A DNA stretch of 64,000 bases from the IMG/VR virus record IMGVR_UViG_3300000553_000004, positions 1-64,000 of that record; one strand, given 5' to 3'. Numbering within the stretch: the stretch's first letter is position 1; every line of letters begins with the position of its first letter. Below, piece after piece: positions 1,873-38,826 of the stretch. The position numbers and the translations under genes were made by a program. Below the pieces are notes generated by a model. The model was given only the letters and a program-made list of their open reading frames with translations, searched no databases and had not been told where the DNA came from.

Positions 1873-3030
1873 ATGGCAAAAGGAAAATCTAATCACATTG
1901 ACGGCGAAGTAACTAAGGTTCAAAAAATGGAACGTAGTGAACTTGCAGAACTGGTACATAAGGCATTGAATAAAGCATCGGCCGATGGCAGTAAAGTTGC
2001 ATACTTCTTGGATGAAGAAGAAGACCCGTCAATGGTAACGGATTGGATTTCTACGGGTTCTACTCTTTTGGATTTGGCAATTTCAAATCGAAAGAAGGGC
2101 GGTTTGCCAGTTGGAAGAATTGTTGAACTAAGTTCACAAGAAGCTGCCGGTAAGAGTTTGATTTGCGCTCACATTTTAGCGGAAACGCAGAAATTGGGTG
2201 GATATGGAGTTTTGATTGATACTGAAAATGCAGCGGCACCCGAATTTTGGGCCTCGGTTGGATTGGATGTGAAGAATCTTGGTTACATTCCTCTCTACAC
2301 GGTTGAATCCATCTTCGCCAAGATTGAAGAAGTCATTGGCATCGTAAGAAAACATGATAAGAAACAATTGGTGACTATTGTTGTTGATTCTCTTTCTCAA
2401 GCGTCAAGTGAAGTTGAAATGGAATCGGAACACGGTAAAGATGGATATAACACATCTAAATCTATTATTATCAGTAAGGCCTGTCGTAAGATTACAGGAC
2501 TGATTGGTCAACAGAGAATTCTTGTTGTATTCGTAAATCAACTTCGTATGAATTTGGCTGCAGTCGGACATCAAGATAAATGGATTGTTCCGGGTGGTAA
2601 GGCTATGGCCTTCGCCGCCTCTGTTCGCCTCCGTTTATCAAACATGGGTAAATTGAAAGGCGCTGGTCAGAAAATTATTGGCAACAAGTGTAAAGTTGTT
2701 GTGACCAAGAATCGTATGGGCCCTCCACATAGAACTGGTTTATTTGAGATTCATTATGATAGTGGTATTCAAGATTTAACGAGCTGGTTGGATTTTTTGA
2801 AGGATAATGGATTCGCTAGAAAAGACGGCGACAAGTATGCAGTTAAACTTCCAAGTGGAACTGTGAAATTAGCCACAAGAGAGTTCCTCGAAAAGATTCA
2901 CGCCGACCCTATATTCAAGGATGAAATTTATGATGTCATAGCCACGGATTATATTATGAAATACAGACCCGCCAATAGTGATATCATCGAAAATTTGTCA
3001 GTTGATGAAAACGTCGAAGACGAGGGATGA
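1873..3030 (+). CDS. recA: RecA/UvsX-like recombinase
   Basis: ISTGSTLLDLAI..GGLPVGRIVE, Walker A QEAAGKS, IVVDS, FVNQLR, KNRMGPP. Confidence 0.93.
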   Translation: MAKGKSNHIDGEVTKVQKMERSELAELVHKALNKASADGSKVAYFLDEEEDPSMVTDWISTGSTLLDLAISNRKKGGLPVGRIVELSSQEAAGKSLICAHILAETQKLGGYGVLIDTENAAAPEFWASVGLDVKNLGYIPLYTVESIFAKIEEVIGIVRKHDKKQLVTIVVDSLSQASSEVEMESEHGKDGYNTSKSIIISKACRKITGLIGQQRILVVFVNQLRMNLAAVGHQDKWIVPGGKAMAFAASVRLRLSNMGKLKGAGQKIIGNKCKVVVTKNRMGPPHRTGLFEIHYDSGIQDLTSWLDFLKDNGFARKDGDKYAVKLPSGTVKLATREFLEKIHADPIFKDEIYDVIATDYIMKYRPANSDIIENLSVDENVEDEG

Positions 3031-3033
3031 TAT

Positions 3034-3312
3034 ATGTATAAATTGTATCATTATCCAACTGAACTTGAGTATTTTTTCTTAAAAAGACCAACCATTTCAA
3101 GTATGGTAAAAATATTAAACCAACTTGGCTACCGAATGAAAGGTAATAGGATAATGGCCGACAATAACAACATCAGATGTTATCATACTACCAAATCTGA
3201 ATTTAAAATTACAAAAATTAAATTTTCAGATTCGTGTGATTGTGAAAGCGATGAGAACCAATGTTGCGACATTTGCACGGGCTGGACAAAAAATAGTAAG
3301 GATAAAAAATGA
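3034..3312 (+). CDS. hypothetical protein, Cys-rich C-terminus
   Basis: 92 aa ORF in operon context. Confidence 0.6.
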   Translation: MYKLYHYPTELEYFFLKRPTISSMVKILNQLGYRMKGNRIMADNNNIRCYHTTKSEFKITKIKFSDSCDCESDENQCCDICTGWTKNSKDKK

Positions 3313-3499: not shown

Positions 3500-4444
3500 A
3501 TGAAAAATTTAGAATCGATGGTAGATGTATGTTATCAAACATACATCAATGATGAAACAATTGTGGGGTTTGATGGTTTATTACGGTCTAAAGGATTAGG
3601 TAGTAAACGAATCATCAAACTCCGTAATCTTATCTATGAAAAATATGGTAAAGAAGAACTCATAAAGATTTATCGAAAACGGTTGACCAGACATTCTCAT
3701 AAAGTCAGACCAAAAGAAAGTTACCAACATACGGAAGAATGGAATGAGAATATTAAAAAAGGTAATATAGAATCTTGGAATAATTCAGGCGAAGAAAGAA
3801 AAGAATTATCAAGACAGAATATGTTAAAATATTGTGCGCCTAAAAGTCAATCTGATGATGCTATAAAAAAACGAGTTAAATCACGAAGTTGGTATAAACA
3901 CCATTCCAAGGAAACGATTGATAAAATCACAGAATCCAATAAAGGAAGAACTCTTACAAAAGAACATAAACAAAAATTAAGTAAGGCTAAAATTGGTAAA
4001 CCATCAAACAGAAAAGGCGAACATCATTCGGATGCTACAAAGAAAAAACTTTCTGAAATGACAAAGTTAATGTGGAAAAATGGAATCCATAAAAGAACTT
4101 TTAAATCTAAAGGACAGTTAGAAGTCATAGAAATACTAACTAAGTTGGGATATGATATTAAAGATGAATATCTAATTGACGGAAGACCATTTGACGTTTT
4201 TGTAAAAGATAAAAATTTGGTCATTGAATTTAATGGAACATTTTGGCATCGCGACCCAAGATTTTATAAAGCATTTCCTTTAAAAGAAAAATATACTGTT
4301 GATAAAGAGTGTGAAAGAGTTTGGAAGAATGATTTAGAAAAAGTTGACATTGCCAAGAAACATGGATATGATGTAAAAATTATTTGGCAATATGATTGGG
4401 AAAATTGTCCTGATAAAGTCAAATATTTAAAAGAAATTTTATGA
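3500..4444 (+). mobile_element. free-standing homing endonuclease (NUMOD3-like repeats + DUF559/Vsr-like PD-(D/E)XK domain)
   Basis: HSKETIDKI..NKG and HSDATKKKLS repeats; FDVF..LVIEFNGTFWH nuclease motif. Confidence 0.8.
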
Positions 4445-5505
4445 ACGATAAACAACCTGATATTTTCTCAATATGGGAAAATCTCAAAAAAGAGAAAGCA
4501 TTGGCCGCCGCTAATGGAATTTCTTCCGTAAAACGGAAAGAAGTTTTATTAGTTGACGGCCTCTAACGCAACACTTTTTTGAGATGTTTCATGGCCATCC
4601 CGACAATGAATGAAGACGGTCTTCACACAGGAGGAATTAGTGGTTTTCTAAAGAGTGTTGGATACGCCATCAAATCATATCAACCTGATAGATGTGTAAT
4701 TGTATTCGATGGTCACGGCGGCTCTTTTAAAAGACGAAAAATCTATTCAGATTACAAGGCCCATAAGAGAACTAAAATTCGGTTGAATAGAATATATGAA
4801 GAGAATCTTACCGATGAAGATATTTCTATGCAGAAACAACTTCAAAGGTTGGTAGCATACCTTCAAAGTCTACCAGTCAATATGTTAGCTTTGGATAATG
4901 TAGAGGCTGATGATACTATGGCTCATCTGGCTCTAGATACATTTAAAGATTGGAATACGACAATTATGTCTGCCGACAAGGATTTTCTACAAATTGTCAG
5001 TGACCACGTAAAAGTCTGGAGTCCTACTAAAAAACGATTATATAGTCCTCAAGATGTATTAAATGAATATGGGGTAAGTTCCGCCAACTTCGTTTATTTC
5101 AGAACACTTGATGGGGACGTATCCGATAATATCCCAGGCTTGCGTGGTTGTGGTTTAAAGACCATTGTAAAGGCATTCCCTATGTTGTCTGGTACTAAGG
5201 TAGAACTCGTCCAATTGAAGGAATACGCAATTCAAAACGCGGGTAAATTGAAGGTTTATGACACAATCGTCGAAAATTGGAACGATGTAGAGCGAAATTA
5301 CGCATTAATGCAGTTAACTGACACAGCATTAACTACTATGGCTCAACTACATGTACAAGAAGTTATAGATAAACCAATTCAAAAACTTAATAGATTCGAG
5401 TTAATTAAACAGATGTCGTCTGATAATTTGACAAATACCATTAATAATTTACCAAATTGGATGAACGAATGTTTTAGTAAATTAGATTCATTTGTAAAGG
5501 AATAA
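4441..5505 (+). CDS. 5'-3' exonuclease/flap endonuclease (T4 RNase H / Pol I N-domain family), interrupted by in-frame TAA at 4564-4566
   Basis: One frame from ATG 4441: LLVDGL*RNTFLRCF; downstream FDG, EADD, SADKDFLQ, GDVSDNIPG motifs. Confidence 0.85.
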
Positions 5506-35283: not shown

Positions 35284-35439
35284 ATGGGTCGCAATAAATT
35301 AAACCGAACGGATGAAGAAATACGAGAACAAAATCGTATTCGTCAAAGGAGATTTTATGACAAGCATAGTAAACGAATCAGAAAAGAAAAACTTAGAAAA
35401 TATTACGAAAAAAAGGAAGTATCCAATAAAGGTAGTTGA
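35284..35439 (+). CDS. 51 aa basic helical peptide overlapping homing endonuclease
   Basis: MGRNKLNRTDEEIREQNRIRQRRFYDKHSKRIRKE; homolog at 49469; not in ORF track. Confidence 0.7.
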   Translation: MGRNKLNRTDEEIREQNRIRQRRFYDKHSKRIRKEKLRKYYEKKEVSNKGS

Positions 35440-36124
35440 CGGAAAGAAAATTTGGTATAAGTTTTGTCCTAATTGTAATAGAGAACAACAATATTCTACT
35501 TTAAGAGCCGCATCACACGCCACGAAGAGAAATAAACAATGTTTGTTTTGTAAAAATAAAGAAGATGGGAATCCATTTTTCGGCAAACACCATACTATAG
35601 AACATAGAGAAAATTTATCTAAAAAACAATTGGTTAGTTGTTCTTATCGTTATAAAAGAGTTGGTAAAAATCCTGATAAAATTAATAAACGATGTAAATT
35701 TTGTGAAAATGAATTTAAAGTTATAAAGTCATTGCATTTACAAAAATATTGTAAATATGAGTGTGCGTTAAAAGATAATTTTGGATTTCAACCATTCAAA
35801 AAAACTAAACCTGAAAGAAAGTTTGAAGAGTGGCTTAAAATCAACAATATAGATTATAAATCATCATTTCAGTTAAAAGGAAAATTATACGATTTTTATA
35901 TACCATCTAAAAATATATTGGTTGAAATTGATGGAATTTATTGGCATGGAAAAAATTTAAAATATGATGAACTGAATGAAACACAAAAAAGAAATAGAAT
36001 TAATGATAATAGAAAAACTTGTATTGCCAAGGAAAATGGTTATACTCTGATAAGAATTTGGGAAGATGAAATAGAGGACAAAACGTGTATCAAAATATTT
36101 ACATTTCAAGAAAAGATAATATAG
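35312..36124 (+). mobile_element. homing endonuclease (Zn-finger + DUF559-like PD-(D/E)XK)
   Basis: CPNC, CLFC, CKFC; YDFYI..LVEIDGIYWH; overlaps polymerase start. Confidence 0.8.
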
Positions 36125-38826
36125 TTCATTTGTGGGATGATATGGCGGGATATCGGACGTTCCCATATGAAAAGTATGCTTATAAACGTCATCCAGGCGG
36201 CAACTTCAAATCTCTTTATGGAGATGAATTAGTCAGAGTTGTAAATTATAATGATAAAGACTCTAATCTATTTGAGTCTGATGTTCCCGCTGACATGCGT
36301 GTATTATTAGATTATTATCCCGATTCAGACGAACCATCTACAGGAAATAAAATAGGCGTGATTGATATCGAAATATCTACCGAAGGTGGATTCTCTACTC
36401 CTGACTTGGCAGAACAGCCTATTACAAGTATATCTCTTTACGACTTTGTTACTAGAACGTGTTTCGTTTTTGTTATTGATAAAGAGAGTAAGGTAGAAAA
36501 GAACGAACTAGAAGTAGACCCTTGGTTGCCTTTGGAATGGAAGGTACAGAGTGAAGAAGAAAATAAAAAAATCAAAATCGTCACATTGCCTTATGATAAT
36601 GAAGATGATATGTTGATGAGTTTCATGGATAAATGGCAAGAATGTGCATTTACGATTGTGACAGGATGGAATGTCGACTTCTTCGATATGCCGTATCTAT
36701 ACAACCGCTTGAAGAAGTGTTTGACGGCCAAGGCAGCTAAATGTCTATCTCCGATTGGAGTTTGTTATCTAAATACCCATAGTAAAAAATTGACTATCGC
36801 CGGTGTATCCGTTATGGATTACATCTTATTGTATAAGAAATTCTTGGCTGGTAAAATGGAACCTACTTGGGCATTAGGGCCGATTGGAAAAAAGGTCGTC
36901 GGATTTGGTAAGGTTCAATACCACGGAAATCTAAATGATTTATACAAAACGGATATTAAAAAATTCTTAGAATACAACATTACAGACGTAAAGATTGTAG
37001 TCGCTATTGATGTTAAATTGAAGTTGATTGACCTCTATAGAACCATCTGTCACGTAGGTCATGTTCCATACGAGAGTTTCCATATGCCTGCGAGATATCT
37101 CGACGGCGCATCATTAATGTATCTCCATAGAAACGGCGTCATAGCTCCGAACAAACCGGCTGGTGGACGCGAGGAATATGAGGATAGTATGGAGGATGGT
37201 GAAGAAGGGTTCTCAGGGGCATTTGTTAAAGAACCTGTTCCTGGTAGATATGATTGGGTATTCGATTTGGATTTGACTTCCATGTATCCAAATATCATCA
37301 TTTCTTTAAATATTTCGCCTGAGACTAAGGTCGGTAAAATTATTAAAGCTGAATATAATGATGATTGTAAAGTTGAGAAACGTCGTGGCATCTTAAAAGA
37401 AATCGATGAAATGAAGACGGAGATGAAAGACCGTCTTTGGTCAAGTGAAGATGGTAAGGAAGAATATATTCAACGTCGTTGTCGTGAATTTGATATGGAG
37501 TATCATGTTCGTGAGAAATTGGAAAACTATCATCTTGGAACGACTGAATATAAGAAGGATGAGTTTAGGAATTTAATTAAAGATGCCAATTACTCTCTTA
37601 GTTCTAACGGCGTTCTTTATCGTAGAGATAAGCCCGGAGTTGTACCGACGTTGTTGCAATTATGGTTCCAACAACGTAAGGATATGAGAAAGAAGGCGTC
37701 AGAGTTTAGAAAAGCTGGAAATGTCGAAAAGTATAATTTCTATAATCAACGTCAACAAGTTCAAAAGATTTTGTTGAATTCATTCTACGGTGTATTGGGA
37801 CTTCCGATATTTCGATTCTACGATGTAGATAACGCCGAGGCTGTAACCATGTCCGGCGTCGATATCATTCAGACCACATCCAAAGCCATCAACATTTATT
37901 ACAAGAATGCGTTGGAAGTTGAGACTGGTGACTGGGTAATCTACAGTGATACCGACTCTTGTTTCGTCGATGCCGTTCCGATTATCAAAAAGAGATTTCC
38001 TGATTTGGATTTCAATAATGACGATGAAATGACAAAGGCAATTATGAGTGTCACCACGGAAGTACAGACCTACGTTAATAAATTCTATGACATTATGGCA
38101 AAGAGATTCTTTAATCTTGATGCTCATACATTTGATGCCAAACAGGAAGTTATTAGTAAGTCGTCCTTTTGGTTGGCTAAGAAACGGTATGCTCAGTGGA
38201 TTATTCACAAAGAAGGACATCTATTAGAAAAACCGGAATTAGAAGTAAAGGGTATTGACGTTGTTAGAACTTCATTCCCAATGGCATTTCGTAAATTCAT
38301 GGATTTATTTCTAAGAAAGTTATTAACTTCCGCCCCAAAATCGGAAATAGATGCAATGATTTTAAAAGTAAAGGAAGAAGTTAAAACTTTGCCTGTTCTT
38401 GAAATAGCGAAAAATACATCGGTGAAATTTGTAAGTCAAGACGGAACTAAAAATTATAATCCGGAAAGTAGAAGACCATTACACTTTGAAAGTAAAACTC
38501 CCGCCCAAGCCAAAGCGGCATTGGCCTATAATGATTTAATTGTTAAGATGGGATTAGAAAAAACATGTGAACCAATCTATCATGGAAGTAAAATTAAATG
38601 GGTATATCTTCAAGACAATGGATATGGACTCGATGCTATCGCTATGAAAGGTGATGGTAATGACGCAGACGAATTATTAAAATTCATAGATACTCACGTC
38701 GATAGAAAGAAAATGTTTGAAAATGAACTCAAGAGTAAGTTATCTGACTTCTACGATGTTTTGAGATGGGCATTCCCCAACCCATCCGTCGCAACGGCTT
38801 CAAACTTTTTTGATTTTGGTGGATGA
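36085..38826 (+). CDS. polB: family B DNA polymerase with 3'-5' exonuclease (T4 gp43-like)
   Basis: DIE, GWNVDFFD, YNITD; DLTSMYP, KILLNSFYG, YSDTDS, KKRY, KGID. Confidence 0.96.
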   Translation: MYQNIYISRKDNIVHLWDDMAGYRTFPYEKYAYKRHPGGNFKSLYGDELVRVVNYNDKDSNLFESDVPADMRVLLDYYPDSDEPSTGNKIGVIDIEISTEGGFSTPDLAEQPITSISLYDFVTRTCFVFVIDKESKVEKNELEVDPWLPLEWKVQSEEENKKIKIVTLPYDNEDDMLMSFMDKWQECAFTIVTGWNVDFFDMPYLYNRLKKCLTAKAAKCLSPIGVCYLNTHSKKLTIAGVSVMDYILLYKKFLAGKMEPTWALGPIGKKVVGFGKVQYHGNLNDLYKTDIKKFLEYNITDVKIVVAIDVKLKLIDLYRTICHVGHVPYESFHMPARYLDGASLMYLHRNGVIAPNKPAGGREEYEDSMEDGEEGFSGAFVKEPVPGRYDWVFDLDLTSMYPNIIISLNISPETKVGKIIKAEYNDDCKVEKRRGILKEIDEMKTEMKDRLWSSEDGKEEYIQRRCREFDMEYHVREKLENYHLGTTEYKKDEFRNLIKDANYSLSSNGVLYRRDKPGVVPTLLQLWFQQRKDMRKKASEFRKAGNVEKYNFYNQRQQVQKILLNSFYGVLGLPIFRFYDVDNAEAVTMSGVDIIQTTSKAINIYYKNALEVETGDWVIYSDTDSCFVDAVPIIKKRFPDLDFNNDDEMTKAIMSVTTEVQTYVNKFYDIMAKRFFNLDAHTFDAKQEVISKSSFWLAKKRYAQWIIHKEGHLLEKPELEVKGIDVVRTSFPMAFRKFMDLFLRKLLTSAPKSEIDAMILKVKEEVKTLPVLEIAKNTSVKFVSQDGTKNYNPESRRPLHFESKTPAQAKAALAYNDLIVKMGLEKTCEPIYHGSKIKWVYLQDNGYGLDAIAMKGDGNDADELLKFIDTHVDRKKMFENELKSKLSDFYDVLRWAFPNPSVATASNFFDFGG

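Follow-up and report, generated by a model that had tools for sequence, protein, structure and literature searches.

A candidate stop-hop site at the junction of a homing-endonuclease cassette in phage 5'-3' exonuclease genes

An in-frame stop codon interrupts an otherwise intact 5'-3' exonuclease gene in an uncultured phage genome (IMG/VR record IMGVR_UViG_3300000553_000004, positions 1 to 64,000; this 64,000-nucleotide stretch is referred to here as the window). The stop is part of six extra bases that mark the edge of a mobile homing-endonuclease cassette, and inserts of this kind recur in the same gene of many uncultured phages. Comparative sequence evidence suggests that ribosomes most likely hop over the stop, which would be the first natural short "stop-hop". 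The hop and its product are inferred from sequence alone.

The insert had been flagged in a first-pass annotation of the window, and this observation is confirmed. That annotation listed several mechanisms without choosing one, and its interpretation is supported in part. Of its proposals, ribosomal stop-hopping or bypass and target-site escape linked to the upstream homing endonuclease fit the comparative data, whereas a group I intron remnant or micro-splicing, a weak local hairpin and an ordinary two-piece enzyme are not supported. It also treated the gene as essential, which is an assumption.

The interrupted exonuclease gene

The exonuclease frame begins at ATG 4441 on the plus strand and reads ...KEVLLVDGL, followed by TAA at 4564-4566 and then by RNTFLRCFMAIPT..., continuing in the same frame to the stop TAA at 5503-5505. 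The N-terminal piece (4441-4563, 41 codons) holds the first catalytic Asp (GAC 4555-4557), which aligns with D18 of Taq polymerase, and ends with CTC (Leu, 4561-4563), the variable position x of the VDGx motif. The 6-nt insert (4564-4569) consists of TAA and CGC (4567-4569). The C-terminal piece (4570-5505) starts with AAC, which encodes an invariant Asn, and is intact over 311 codons. All invariant columns of the family alignment are present in the window (the D of VDG, FDG, VEADD, SADKD and LDGDVSD); the first Asp lies in the N-terminal piece and the remainder in the C-terminal piece.

Pfam PF02739 scored 100.9 bits (cut-off 34.3) on the downstream piece alone and 106.7 bits when the stop was read through. 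The C-terminal H3TH/SAM-fold domain (PF01367) gave a weak match of 28 bits against a cut-off of 40, although close homologs carry a precomputed PF01367 hit. About 100 full-length homologs (57-93% identical) all read VDG[M/Y/T/L/F]NTF with no gap, so the window, which reads VDGL*RNTF, has exactly two extra codons. A blastn search of the locus against GenBank phages found no match, and tblastn found only relatives at or below 41% identity (Microcystis and Flavobacterium phages and one uncultured huge phage), so no cultured model exists.

The six bases are not an assembly error. Separately assembled Logan contigs of four different freshwater runs and samples cover 4300-4594 or more with 0 differences and 0 gaps; these were contigs rather than raw reads, and rare variants are not excluded. 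Two further public contigs (L133 and L291) are identical, and analogous inserts occur in dozens of unrelated assemblies. We found nothing in favor of an artefact, and this explanation is effectively refuted. The record, rated 62% complete by CheckV, holds one copy of the family and no intact paralog.

Interrupted alleles in related phages

The interruption is not a private defect. We identified 26 distinct interrupted alleles in 85 locus records (47 distinct sequences) from related phage contigs. Each carries an insert of 4, 5, 6, 7 or 8 nt at the identical codon boundary, and every insert starts with a stop codon: TAA in 7 alleles, TAG in 10 and TGA in 9. The codon before the stop encodes Leu or Tyr in 25 of 26 alleles and Phe in one. 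In 17 of 26 alleles the stop is followed by C, which is a weak termination context.

Of the 26 alleles, 15 are in frame and 11 are out of frame, so readthrough cannot be the common mechanism. For the in-frame allele of the window, decoding without a 6-nt hop remains possible but unlikely, either by near-cognate or suppressor readthrough of UAA (product VDGL-x-RNTF) or by a 3-nt hop over the stop (product VDGLRNTF); the enzyme would then carry one or two extra residues beside the catalytic Asp. The in-frame insert, the in-frame state of 15 of 26 alleles and the poor match of its CGC to CUC are in favor of this reading. However, the 11 out-of-frame sister alleles share the same hairpin, stop position and cassette, and none of the approximately 100 full-length homologs has an insertion in this loop. 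Among 19 tRNAs there is none with a UUA anticodon, and the only suppressor-like tRNA has a CUA anticodon and would read UAG only.

The bases flanking the stop suggest a hop. The 3 nt before the resume codon AAY match codon x at 2 or more of 3 positions in 21 of 26 alleles, against 0-1 alleles in any other register (permutation P < 5e-5), and 12 alleles are Leu-stop-Leu. The alleles are not phylogenetically independent, and the codon match could partly reflect how the insert arose. The allele of the window is the weakest 6-nt case, as its proposed landing codon CGC matches CTC at positions 1 and 3 only.

A two-piece enzyme, in which the 41-aa N-terminal peptide (helix, strand beta-1 and the catalytic Asp) would associate non-covalently with a separately initiated C-terminal piece, is unlikely. 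In its favor, 9 of 26 alleles have a start codon overlapping or just before the junction (e.g., TAGTG, TTGA and ATG), and phage Aeh1 nrdA, split by MobE, is cited as a precedent. However, 17 of 26 alleles, including that of the window, have no ATG, GTG or TTG upstream of the invariant Asn in the C-terminal frame. The next start lies 3 to 88 codons downstream, and in some alleles 26 to 88 codons; in the window, it is TTG 4579, three codons past the Asn. Yet the first 25 codons after the insert show a dN/dS of 0.04 in the clade described below. The matched flanking codons would also be unexplained.

The downstream piece is under strong purifying selection. Within the TTG|TAGTG clade (19 haplotypes), dN/dS is 0.04 for the first 25 codons after the insert and 0.08 for the rest, at pS 0.39-0.51. 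Comparison of the window with its nearest uninterrupted relative (P0001/L278) gave a dN/dS of 0.04 at a pS of 0.57 for the C-terminal piece. A metagenome scan for the exact allele found only the window's own contig and one identical contig, with 7 other hits being chance matches; the allele was found in one population only and without sequence variation, so these estimates do not measure selection on this allele since the insert arose.

An upstream hairpin and a mobile cassette

A long RNA hairpin (4503-4561, 59 nt) lies inside the N-terminal piece, and its 3' strand ends on the first base of CTC. Its MFE is -32.5 kcal/mol (z -5.7; 0 of 200 shuffles were as stable), and it is the most stable of 391 ORF-stop-ORF junctions in the genome. 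An equivalent hairpin of roughly 55-60 nt abuts the codon before the stop in 46 of 47 interrupted sequences, against 3 of 59 uninterrupted ones (MFE -27.8 against -18.6 kcal/mol, p = 3e-11). The closing helix shows covariation (GC/AU, and GC/UA/AU/GU/UG). In the window this helix has a C·A mismatch, which is compensated by a register shift and by the most stable hairpin of all. A hairpin as such is not unique to interrupted genes, as uninterrupted alleles of one clade also carry a strong conserved hairpin, ending about 15 nt further upstream.

The first-pass annotation had placed the stop in the loop of a weak hairpin (4552-4558/4567-4572). This structure is absent from the MFE and centroid structures once the upstream strand is included; the GUUGACG bases pair instead inside the much stronger 59-nt hairpin. 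Other local hairpins were artefacts of cutting the sequence at -48. An enrichment of [AST][VI][TDN] at -19 to -17 at first resembled a nascent-peptide signal. However, these codons show no synonymous variation and covary with the Asp-Gly codons: they form the 5' strand (NCCRUCA) of the closing helix, i.e., an RNA rather than a peptide signal. A genome-wide search for further sites of this kind found none. The one hit of a helix-based scan looked like an ordinary gene junction, and the next-best candidates of a junction and hairpin scan lie inside a long ORF or among short ORFs.

Directly upstream, at 3500-4444 on the plus strand, is an intact free-standing homing endonuclease gene (314 aa), whose stop overlaps the exonuclease start (ATGA). 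Its product has a NUMOD3 motif (Pfam, 29.2 bits) and a Vsr-like/PD-(D/E)xK-like C-terminal nuclease domain (weak Vsr and MTES_1575 matches), and it matched PHROG 3339 "homing endonuclease" (E 6e-12). A PDB sequence search gave only spurious DARPin repeats. Homologs (40-65% identical) lie directly upstream in 33 of 85 interrupted loci and 0 of 74 uninterrupted loci.

Several lines of evidence indicate a mobile cassette with a sharp boundary at the insert. Against P0001, pN is 0.27 in the N-terminal piece but 0.043 downstream, and nucleotide identity jumps from 0.55-0.67 to 0.78-0.96 at the insert; the N-terminal piece is thus foreign relative to the rest of the gene. Pairs with about 99% identical C-terminal pieces fall to about 60% identity exactly 5' of the insert, and the N-terminal piece is 1-5% divergent where the flanks are 8-24% divergent. 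On the C-piece tree, the interrupted state needs at least 16 changes, 12 of them forced by well-supported branches. The N-piece tree needs 5, but it is confounded by the hairpin columns and is not used as independent evidence.

Removal of the extra bases from mRNA by protein-assisted micro-splicing or editing is very unlikely. RNA repair genes are said in the first-pass annotation to lie in the window, and the hairpin could be a recognition element. However, there is no known precedent for excising 4-8 nt from bacterial or phage mRNA, and the take-off and landing codon match is a translational rather than a splicing signature. A search of 4350-4750 gave no Rfam hit at E <= 1. The insert is only 6 nt, and its borders, which had been compared with those of a group I intron remnant, are explained by the cassette junction.

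A proposed short bypass and its relation to known systems

We propose that the six bases are the right-hand junction of a mobile cassette consisting of the endonuclease gene, a replacement N-terminal coding segment (4441-4563) that folds into a long hairpin, and a short gap starting with a stop codon. In this view, the cassette has moved into the 5'-3' exonuclease gene of many related freshwater and marine phages. The insert probably destroys the endonuclease's own target, the conserved VDGxNTF-coding DNA, and so would protect the carrier genome. The gene would still be expressed as one polypeptide by a programmed short translational bypass. With peptidyl-tRNA-Leu on CUC 4561-4563 and UAA in the A site, the tRNA would unpair, the mRNA would slide 6 nt, and the tRNA would re-pair at CGC 4567-4569, with decoding resuming at AAC 4570 to give the canonical VDGLNTF. 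The hairpin, re-zipping behind the ribosome, is proposed to drive the forward slide; pairing of mRNA leaving the ribosome has been proposed as the driver of forward bypassing (bioRxiv 10.1101/2024.12.09.627546).

We consider this explanation more likely than not. The reality of the insert, its recurrence as 26 alleles, the matching flanking codons, purifying selection, hairpin covariation, the linkage of the endonuclease to interrupted alleles and the sharp cassette boundary are established by our analyses, whereas the hop itself, its single-polypeptide product, the role of the hairpin, and the target and selective cleavage of the endonuclease are inferences. An unlikely alternative is that the window's allele is non-functional or decaying, i.e., that the cassette moved in, the hop works poorly or not at all, and a host 5'-nuclease compensates. 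The window combines the worst landing match among the 6-nt alleles with the closing-helix mismatch, and T4 RNase H is dispensable. On the other hand, the C-terminal piece and the endonuclease ORF are intact, dN/dS against P0001 is low, the hairpin shows compensating changes, and the population is seen unchanged in many freshwater runs.

Efficient translational bypassing in bacteria and phages has essentially one studied family, the T4 gene 60 cassettes, and a 2016 review states that shorter natural counterparts, including in-frame stop hops, were long expected but that none was known (PMC5009743). A broader reading, about as likely as not, is that these alleles are the first natural, evolutionarily maintained stop-hops: a family of 4-8 nt programmed bypass sites, non-homologous to gene 60, driven by a conserved hairpin and carried as the immunity junction of a VSR-like homing-endonuclease cassette in flap-endonuclease genes of uncultured large phages. 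This would mean that pairing an endonuclease with a bypass junction evolved at least twice. The window's locus and its 25 sister alleles offer a natural allelic series, with five gap lengths, all three stop codons, matched and mismatched landing codons and a covarying hairpin, that would make directly testable what drives forward sliding, how much re-pairing is needed and how the resume frame is set. Such genes are currently annotated as a 41-43 aa ORF plus a truncated exonuclease, or as pseudogenes. The locus also suggests that homing endonucleases can protect their carriers by placing untranslated bases inside highly conserved coding targets.

The closest known system is the T4 gene 60 bypass with its MobA cassette (Bonocora et al. 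2011, as cited in Manning & Atkins, bioRxiv 10.1101/2022.08.31.505936). There too, the endonuclease gene lies immediately upstream and overlaps a cassette-borne N-terminal coding segment of about 40-46 codons, and the take-off codon sits just after an invariant Asp-Gly of a metal-binding motif and is followed directly by a stop. A landing codon, matched at family level but only at positions 1 and 3 in the window, lies 5' of the resume codon, the cassette ends at the landing codon, the endonuclease is often lost while the gap is kept, and VSR-like endonucleases replace MobA in some cassettes. However, the gap is 4-8 nt here, against 50 nt in T4 and 20 nt in the shortest reported case. The target is a flap endonuclease gene rather than the topoisomerase II large-subunit gene, the endonuclease has NUMOD3 and Vsr-like domains rather than being MobA (HNH), and it sits upstream of the gene start, so the gene is not split in two by it. 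There is no take-off stem-loop or mini-SD within the gap, no nascent-peptide signal was found and no sequence homology was seen; the 5' hairpin, whose geometry differs from that of the gene 60 take-off stem-loop, is conserved with covariation, whereas the 5' stem-loop is not conserved among gene 60 cassettes. The present cassette is an analog and not a member of the MobA-type family.

Synthetic stop-hops in E. coli (Weiss et al. 1987 and O'Connor et al. 1989, as cited in PMC5009743) likewise have matched codons flanking a stop, so that 9 nt specify one amino acid (e.g., CUU UAG CUA), and +5 and +6 hops were also seen. Those sites are engineered and inefficient, whereas the present ones are natural, conserved under selection and paired with a large upstream hairpin. 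In the programmed +1 frameshift of prfB (RF2), a Leu codon is also followed by a stop and then C (CUU UGA C), and a stimulator acts on the mRNA-exit side of the ribosome and favors forward movement. RF2, however, uses a +1 slip onto an overlapping codon and an SD:anti-SD duplex, while the re-pairing proposed here is non-overlapping at +4 to +8 and the proposed stimulator is an intramolecular hairpin. In genes in pieces such as Aeh1 nrdA/MobE, a free-standing endonuclease is also associated with interruption of a conserved replication-related gene, but both pieces have their own start codons and assemble, whereas most alleles here lack a start for the second piece. Finally, the mitochondrial byp elements of Magnusiomyces capitatus are also short mobile inserts in coding sequence that are skipped by ribosomes between matched or near-matched codons, but they are 27-55 nt long, mitochondrial, present in many genes and not associated with an endonuclease cassette.

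A stop-containing insertion that recurs in exonuclease genes

From ATG 4441, one frame reads 41 codons ending in LLVDGL. A TAA codon follows at 4564-4566, and the same frame then continues as RNTFLRCF through to the stop at 5503-5505. The downstream piece is a clear 5'-3' exonuclease / flap endonuclease, scoring 100.9 bits against PF02739 (cut-off 34.3), with a weaker match to PF01367. The window represents the first 64 kb of a 214.7-kb viral contig rated 62% complete, and this contig holds only one copy of the family. About 100 full-length homologs (57-93% identical) all read VDG-x-NTF with no gap, so the window has exactly two extra codons. The Asp of this motif aligns with D18 of Taq polymerase, the first metal ligand, and every other family-invariant residue is present downstream.

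The first-pass annotation had reported a 6-nt insertion with a stop codon at this site, and that observation held. Contigs assembled separately from four freshwater runs and samples cover the site with no difference and no gap, and two other public contigs are identical, although minority variants cannot be excluded because the comparison was made with contigs. More than 20 runs hold the locus; no RNA run was listed. The interpretation offered in the same annotation, which named ribosomal bypass beside site-specific readthrough and a two-piece enzyme, was supported in part, as described below.

The interruption is not confined to this locus. Some homologs on long contigs begin exactly at NTF, and their DNA shows an N-terminal 43-codon ORF ending in VDGY, a stop, and a shifted frame. 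Pattern scans of IMG/VR, together with these look-ups, gave 85 locus records holding 26 different alleles. The inserts are 4 nt (1 allele), 5 nt (2), 6 nt (15), 7 nt (5) or 8 nt (3) long, and all are located between codon x of VDGx and the invariant Asn codon. Every insert begins with a stop codon, which is TAA in 7 alleles, TAG in 10 and TGA in 9. Eleven alleles are out of frame, so readthrough cannot be the shared mechanism. For the in-frame allele of the window, however, readthrough or a 3-nt hop remains possible. With regard to suppression, ARAGORN calls a tRNA with anticodon CUA, an amber-suppressor type labelled 'Pyl', on the same viral contig outside the window, along with 18 other tRNAs, including Leu-UAG and Leu-UAA, and a tmRNA-like gene (207801-207876; also 200712-201103). 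The CUA tRNA cannot read the UAA of the window, but it hints at TAG suppression or recoding somewhere in this phage.

Matched codons, absence of restart codons, and selection

The three bases immediately preceding the resume codon AAY match codon x at two or more positions in 21 of 26 alleles, whereas in any register shifted by 1-3 nt this holds for 0-1 alleles. Permuting the landing triplets among alleles gives a mean of 10.5 (P < 5e-5). Twelve alleles are Leu-stop-Leu, for example CTT TAG CTG and TTG TAG TTA. [quoted passage not shown] Seventeen of the 26 stops are followed by C, which is a weak termination context. The allele of the window, CTC TAA CGC, matches only at positions 1 and 3 and is the weakest of the 6-nt alleles.

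Codon x, the proposed take-off codon, is Leu or Tyr in 25 of 26 interrupted alleles and never Met or Thr, although Met and Thr are common at this position in uninterrupted genes. In bacteria, Leu and Tyr tRNAs are both class II, with a long variable arm. This bias may be a coincidence, or it may matter for holding the tRNA during the hop.

The data do not fit two ordinary, separately translated pieces. In 17 of 26 alleles, including that of the window, no ATG, GTG or TTG lies in the downstream frame between the last stop and the invariant Asn, and the next start is 3 to 88 codons further on. Nor do the genes appear to be decaying. In the largest clade (codon x TTG, insert TAGTG; 19 haplotypes), dN/dS is 0.04 at pS 0.39 for the first 25 codons after the insert and 0.08 at pS 0.51 for the rest. 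For the window compared with its nearest uninterrupted relative (P0001), the C-terminal piece has pS 0.57 and dN/dS 0.04. The exact allele of the window was found in one lake population only, with no variation, and partial loss of function remains possible for it.

A conserved RNA hairpin before the insert

Interrupted alleles initially seemed to share a peptide motif 17-19 residues before x. Its codons, however, show no synonymous variation; they read NCC-RTC-A and are complementary to T-GAY-GGN, which contains the Asp-Gly codons, with GTC/GAC switching together to ATC/GAT. RNAalifold predicts this helix on its own. In the alignment used (A2), pair 13-63 is GC in 21 sequences and AU in 9, and pair 10-66 uses GC, UA, AU, GU and UG. 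Overall, 91.5% of cells pair, and 0 of 500 shuffles reach the observed covariation. The helix closes a hairpin of about 55-60 nt whose 3' strand ends 0-3 nt before the take-off codon.

Bases -10 to -4 pair far upstream in 46 of 47 interrupted and 3 of 59 uninterrupted sequences, and the MFE over -66 to -1 is -27.8 against -18.6 kcal/mol, respectively (p = 3e-11). In the window, the hairpin is located at 4503-4561, with an MFE of -32.5 kcal/mol and z of -5.7. It is the most stable of the family, a register shift compensates its one mismatch, and it ranks first among 391 ORF-stop-ORF junctions in the genome. A hairpin is not exclusive to interrupted genes: uninterrupted exonuclease genes of a clade of roughly 50% identity (locus records L020, L025, L034, L038, L043, L048, L070 and L079) carry a strong hairpin (-27 to -31 kcal/mol) in the same N-terminal coding region, about -66 to -16 nt before codon x. 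Its sequence differs among them while pairing is kept, but it ends about 15 nt further upstream. It may be the ancestral structure that the cassette version extends.

A mobile cassette and an inferred translational bypass

The endonuclease gene of the window (3500-4444) encodes a NUMOD3 motif and a Vsr-like domain. A homolog lies directly upstream of the exonuclease gene, usually overlapping its start, in 33 of 85 interrupted and 0 of 74 uninterrupted loci. Other interrupted loci have lost the endonuclease. Locus L005 keeps only its last residues (EYLKQIL), which are fused to a small Cys-rich ORF (L005:3697-3876; window 3034-3312; motif CDC....QCCDICTGW) conserved upstream of the cassette, a footprint of endonuclease deletion. 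In loci of the TTG/TAGTG clade that lack the endonuclease (L075:2300-2380 and its equivalent in L100), a perfect, terminator-like inverted repeat (TTTTCCACA...TGTGGAAAA) is located just upstream of the N-terminal piece, inside the foreign segment.

On a tree of C-terminal pieces, the interrupted state needs at least 16 changes, 12 of them forced by well-supported branches. Pairs whose C-terminal pieces are about 99% identical fall to about 60% identity exactly at the insert. Within the TTG/TAGTG clade, the N-terminal piece is 1-5% divergent, while both flanks are 8-24% divergent, and an endonuclease-sized indel of about 900 nt is polymorphic. For the window, nucleotide identity to P0001 and to a further comparison sequence, P0003, jumps from 0.55-0.69 to 0.78-0.96 at the site. 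So the cassette is composed of the endonuclease (often later lost), a replacement N-terminal piece with the hairpin, and the gap, and it ends at the landing codon.

A second free-standing endonuclease ORF of the window (35312-36124, 270 aa) has a C-terminus resembling that of the 3500-4444 protein and overlaps by 40 nt the GTG start of an uninterrupted 913-aa ORF (36085-38826) that, judged by eye, looks like a family-B DNA polymerase. A third, weaker copy of the nuclease domain lies at 134163-134402 of the genome. In two relatives (L005:1019-3690 and L280:1-2672), the RecA/UvsX-like gene is called as two RecA_N pieces (252 and 275 aa), and between them lies a 347-351 aa ORF (faint DUF559, Vsr-like) plus small ORFs. 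This is another endonuclease-associated interruption just upstream of the exonuclease gene, whereas the RecA-like gene of the window (1873-3030) is intact.

The insert, its recurrence, the codon match, the selection, the hairpin covariation and the cassette boundary are shown by the sequences, but the hop, its product, the role of the hairpin and any cleavage target of the endonuclease are inferred only. We propose that, with peptidyl-tRNA-Leu on CUC and UAA in the A site, the tRNA unpairs, the mRNA slides 6 nt, the tRNA re-pairs at CGC, and Asn is decoded at 4570. Literature searches revealed no such case in a flap-endonuclease gene. At take-off, the last 12-15 nt or so of the 3' strand of the hairpin would be inside the ribosome. 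After a hop of 4-8 nt, the helix end would lie 4-8 nt from the P-site codon, which is the spacing tolerated for an SD duplex, but this point is speculative. The architecture parallels that of T4 mobA/gene 60. In this view, zipping up of the hairpin as the mRNA exits would pull the message forward, which is the driver currently proposed for gene 60 (bioRxiv 10.1101/2024.12.09.627546).
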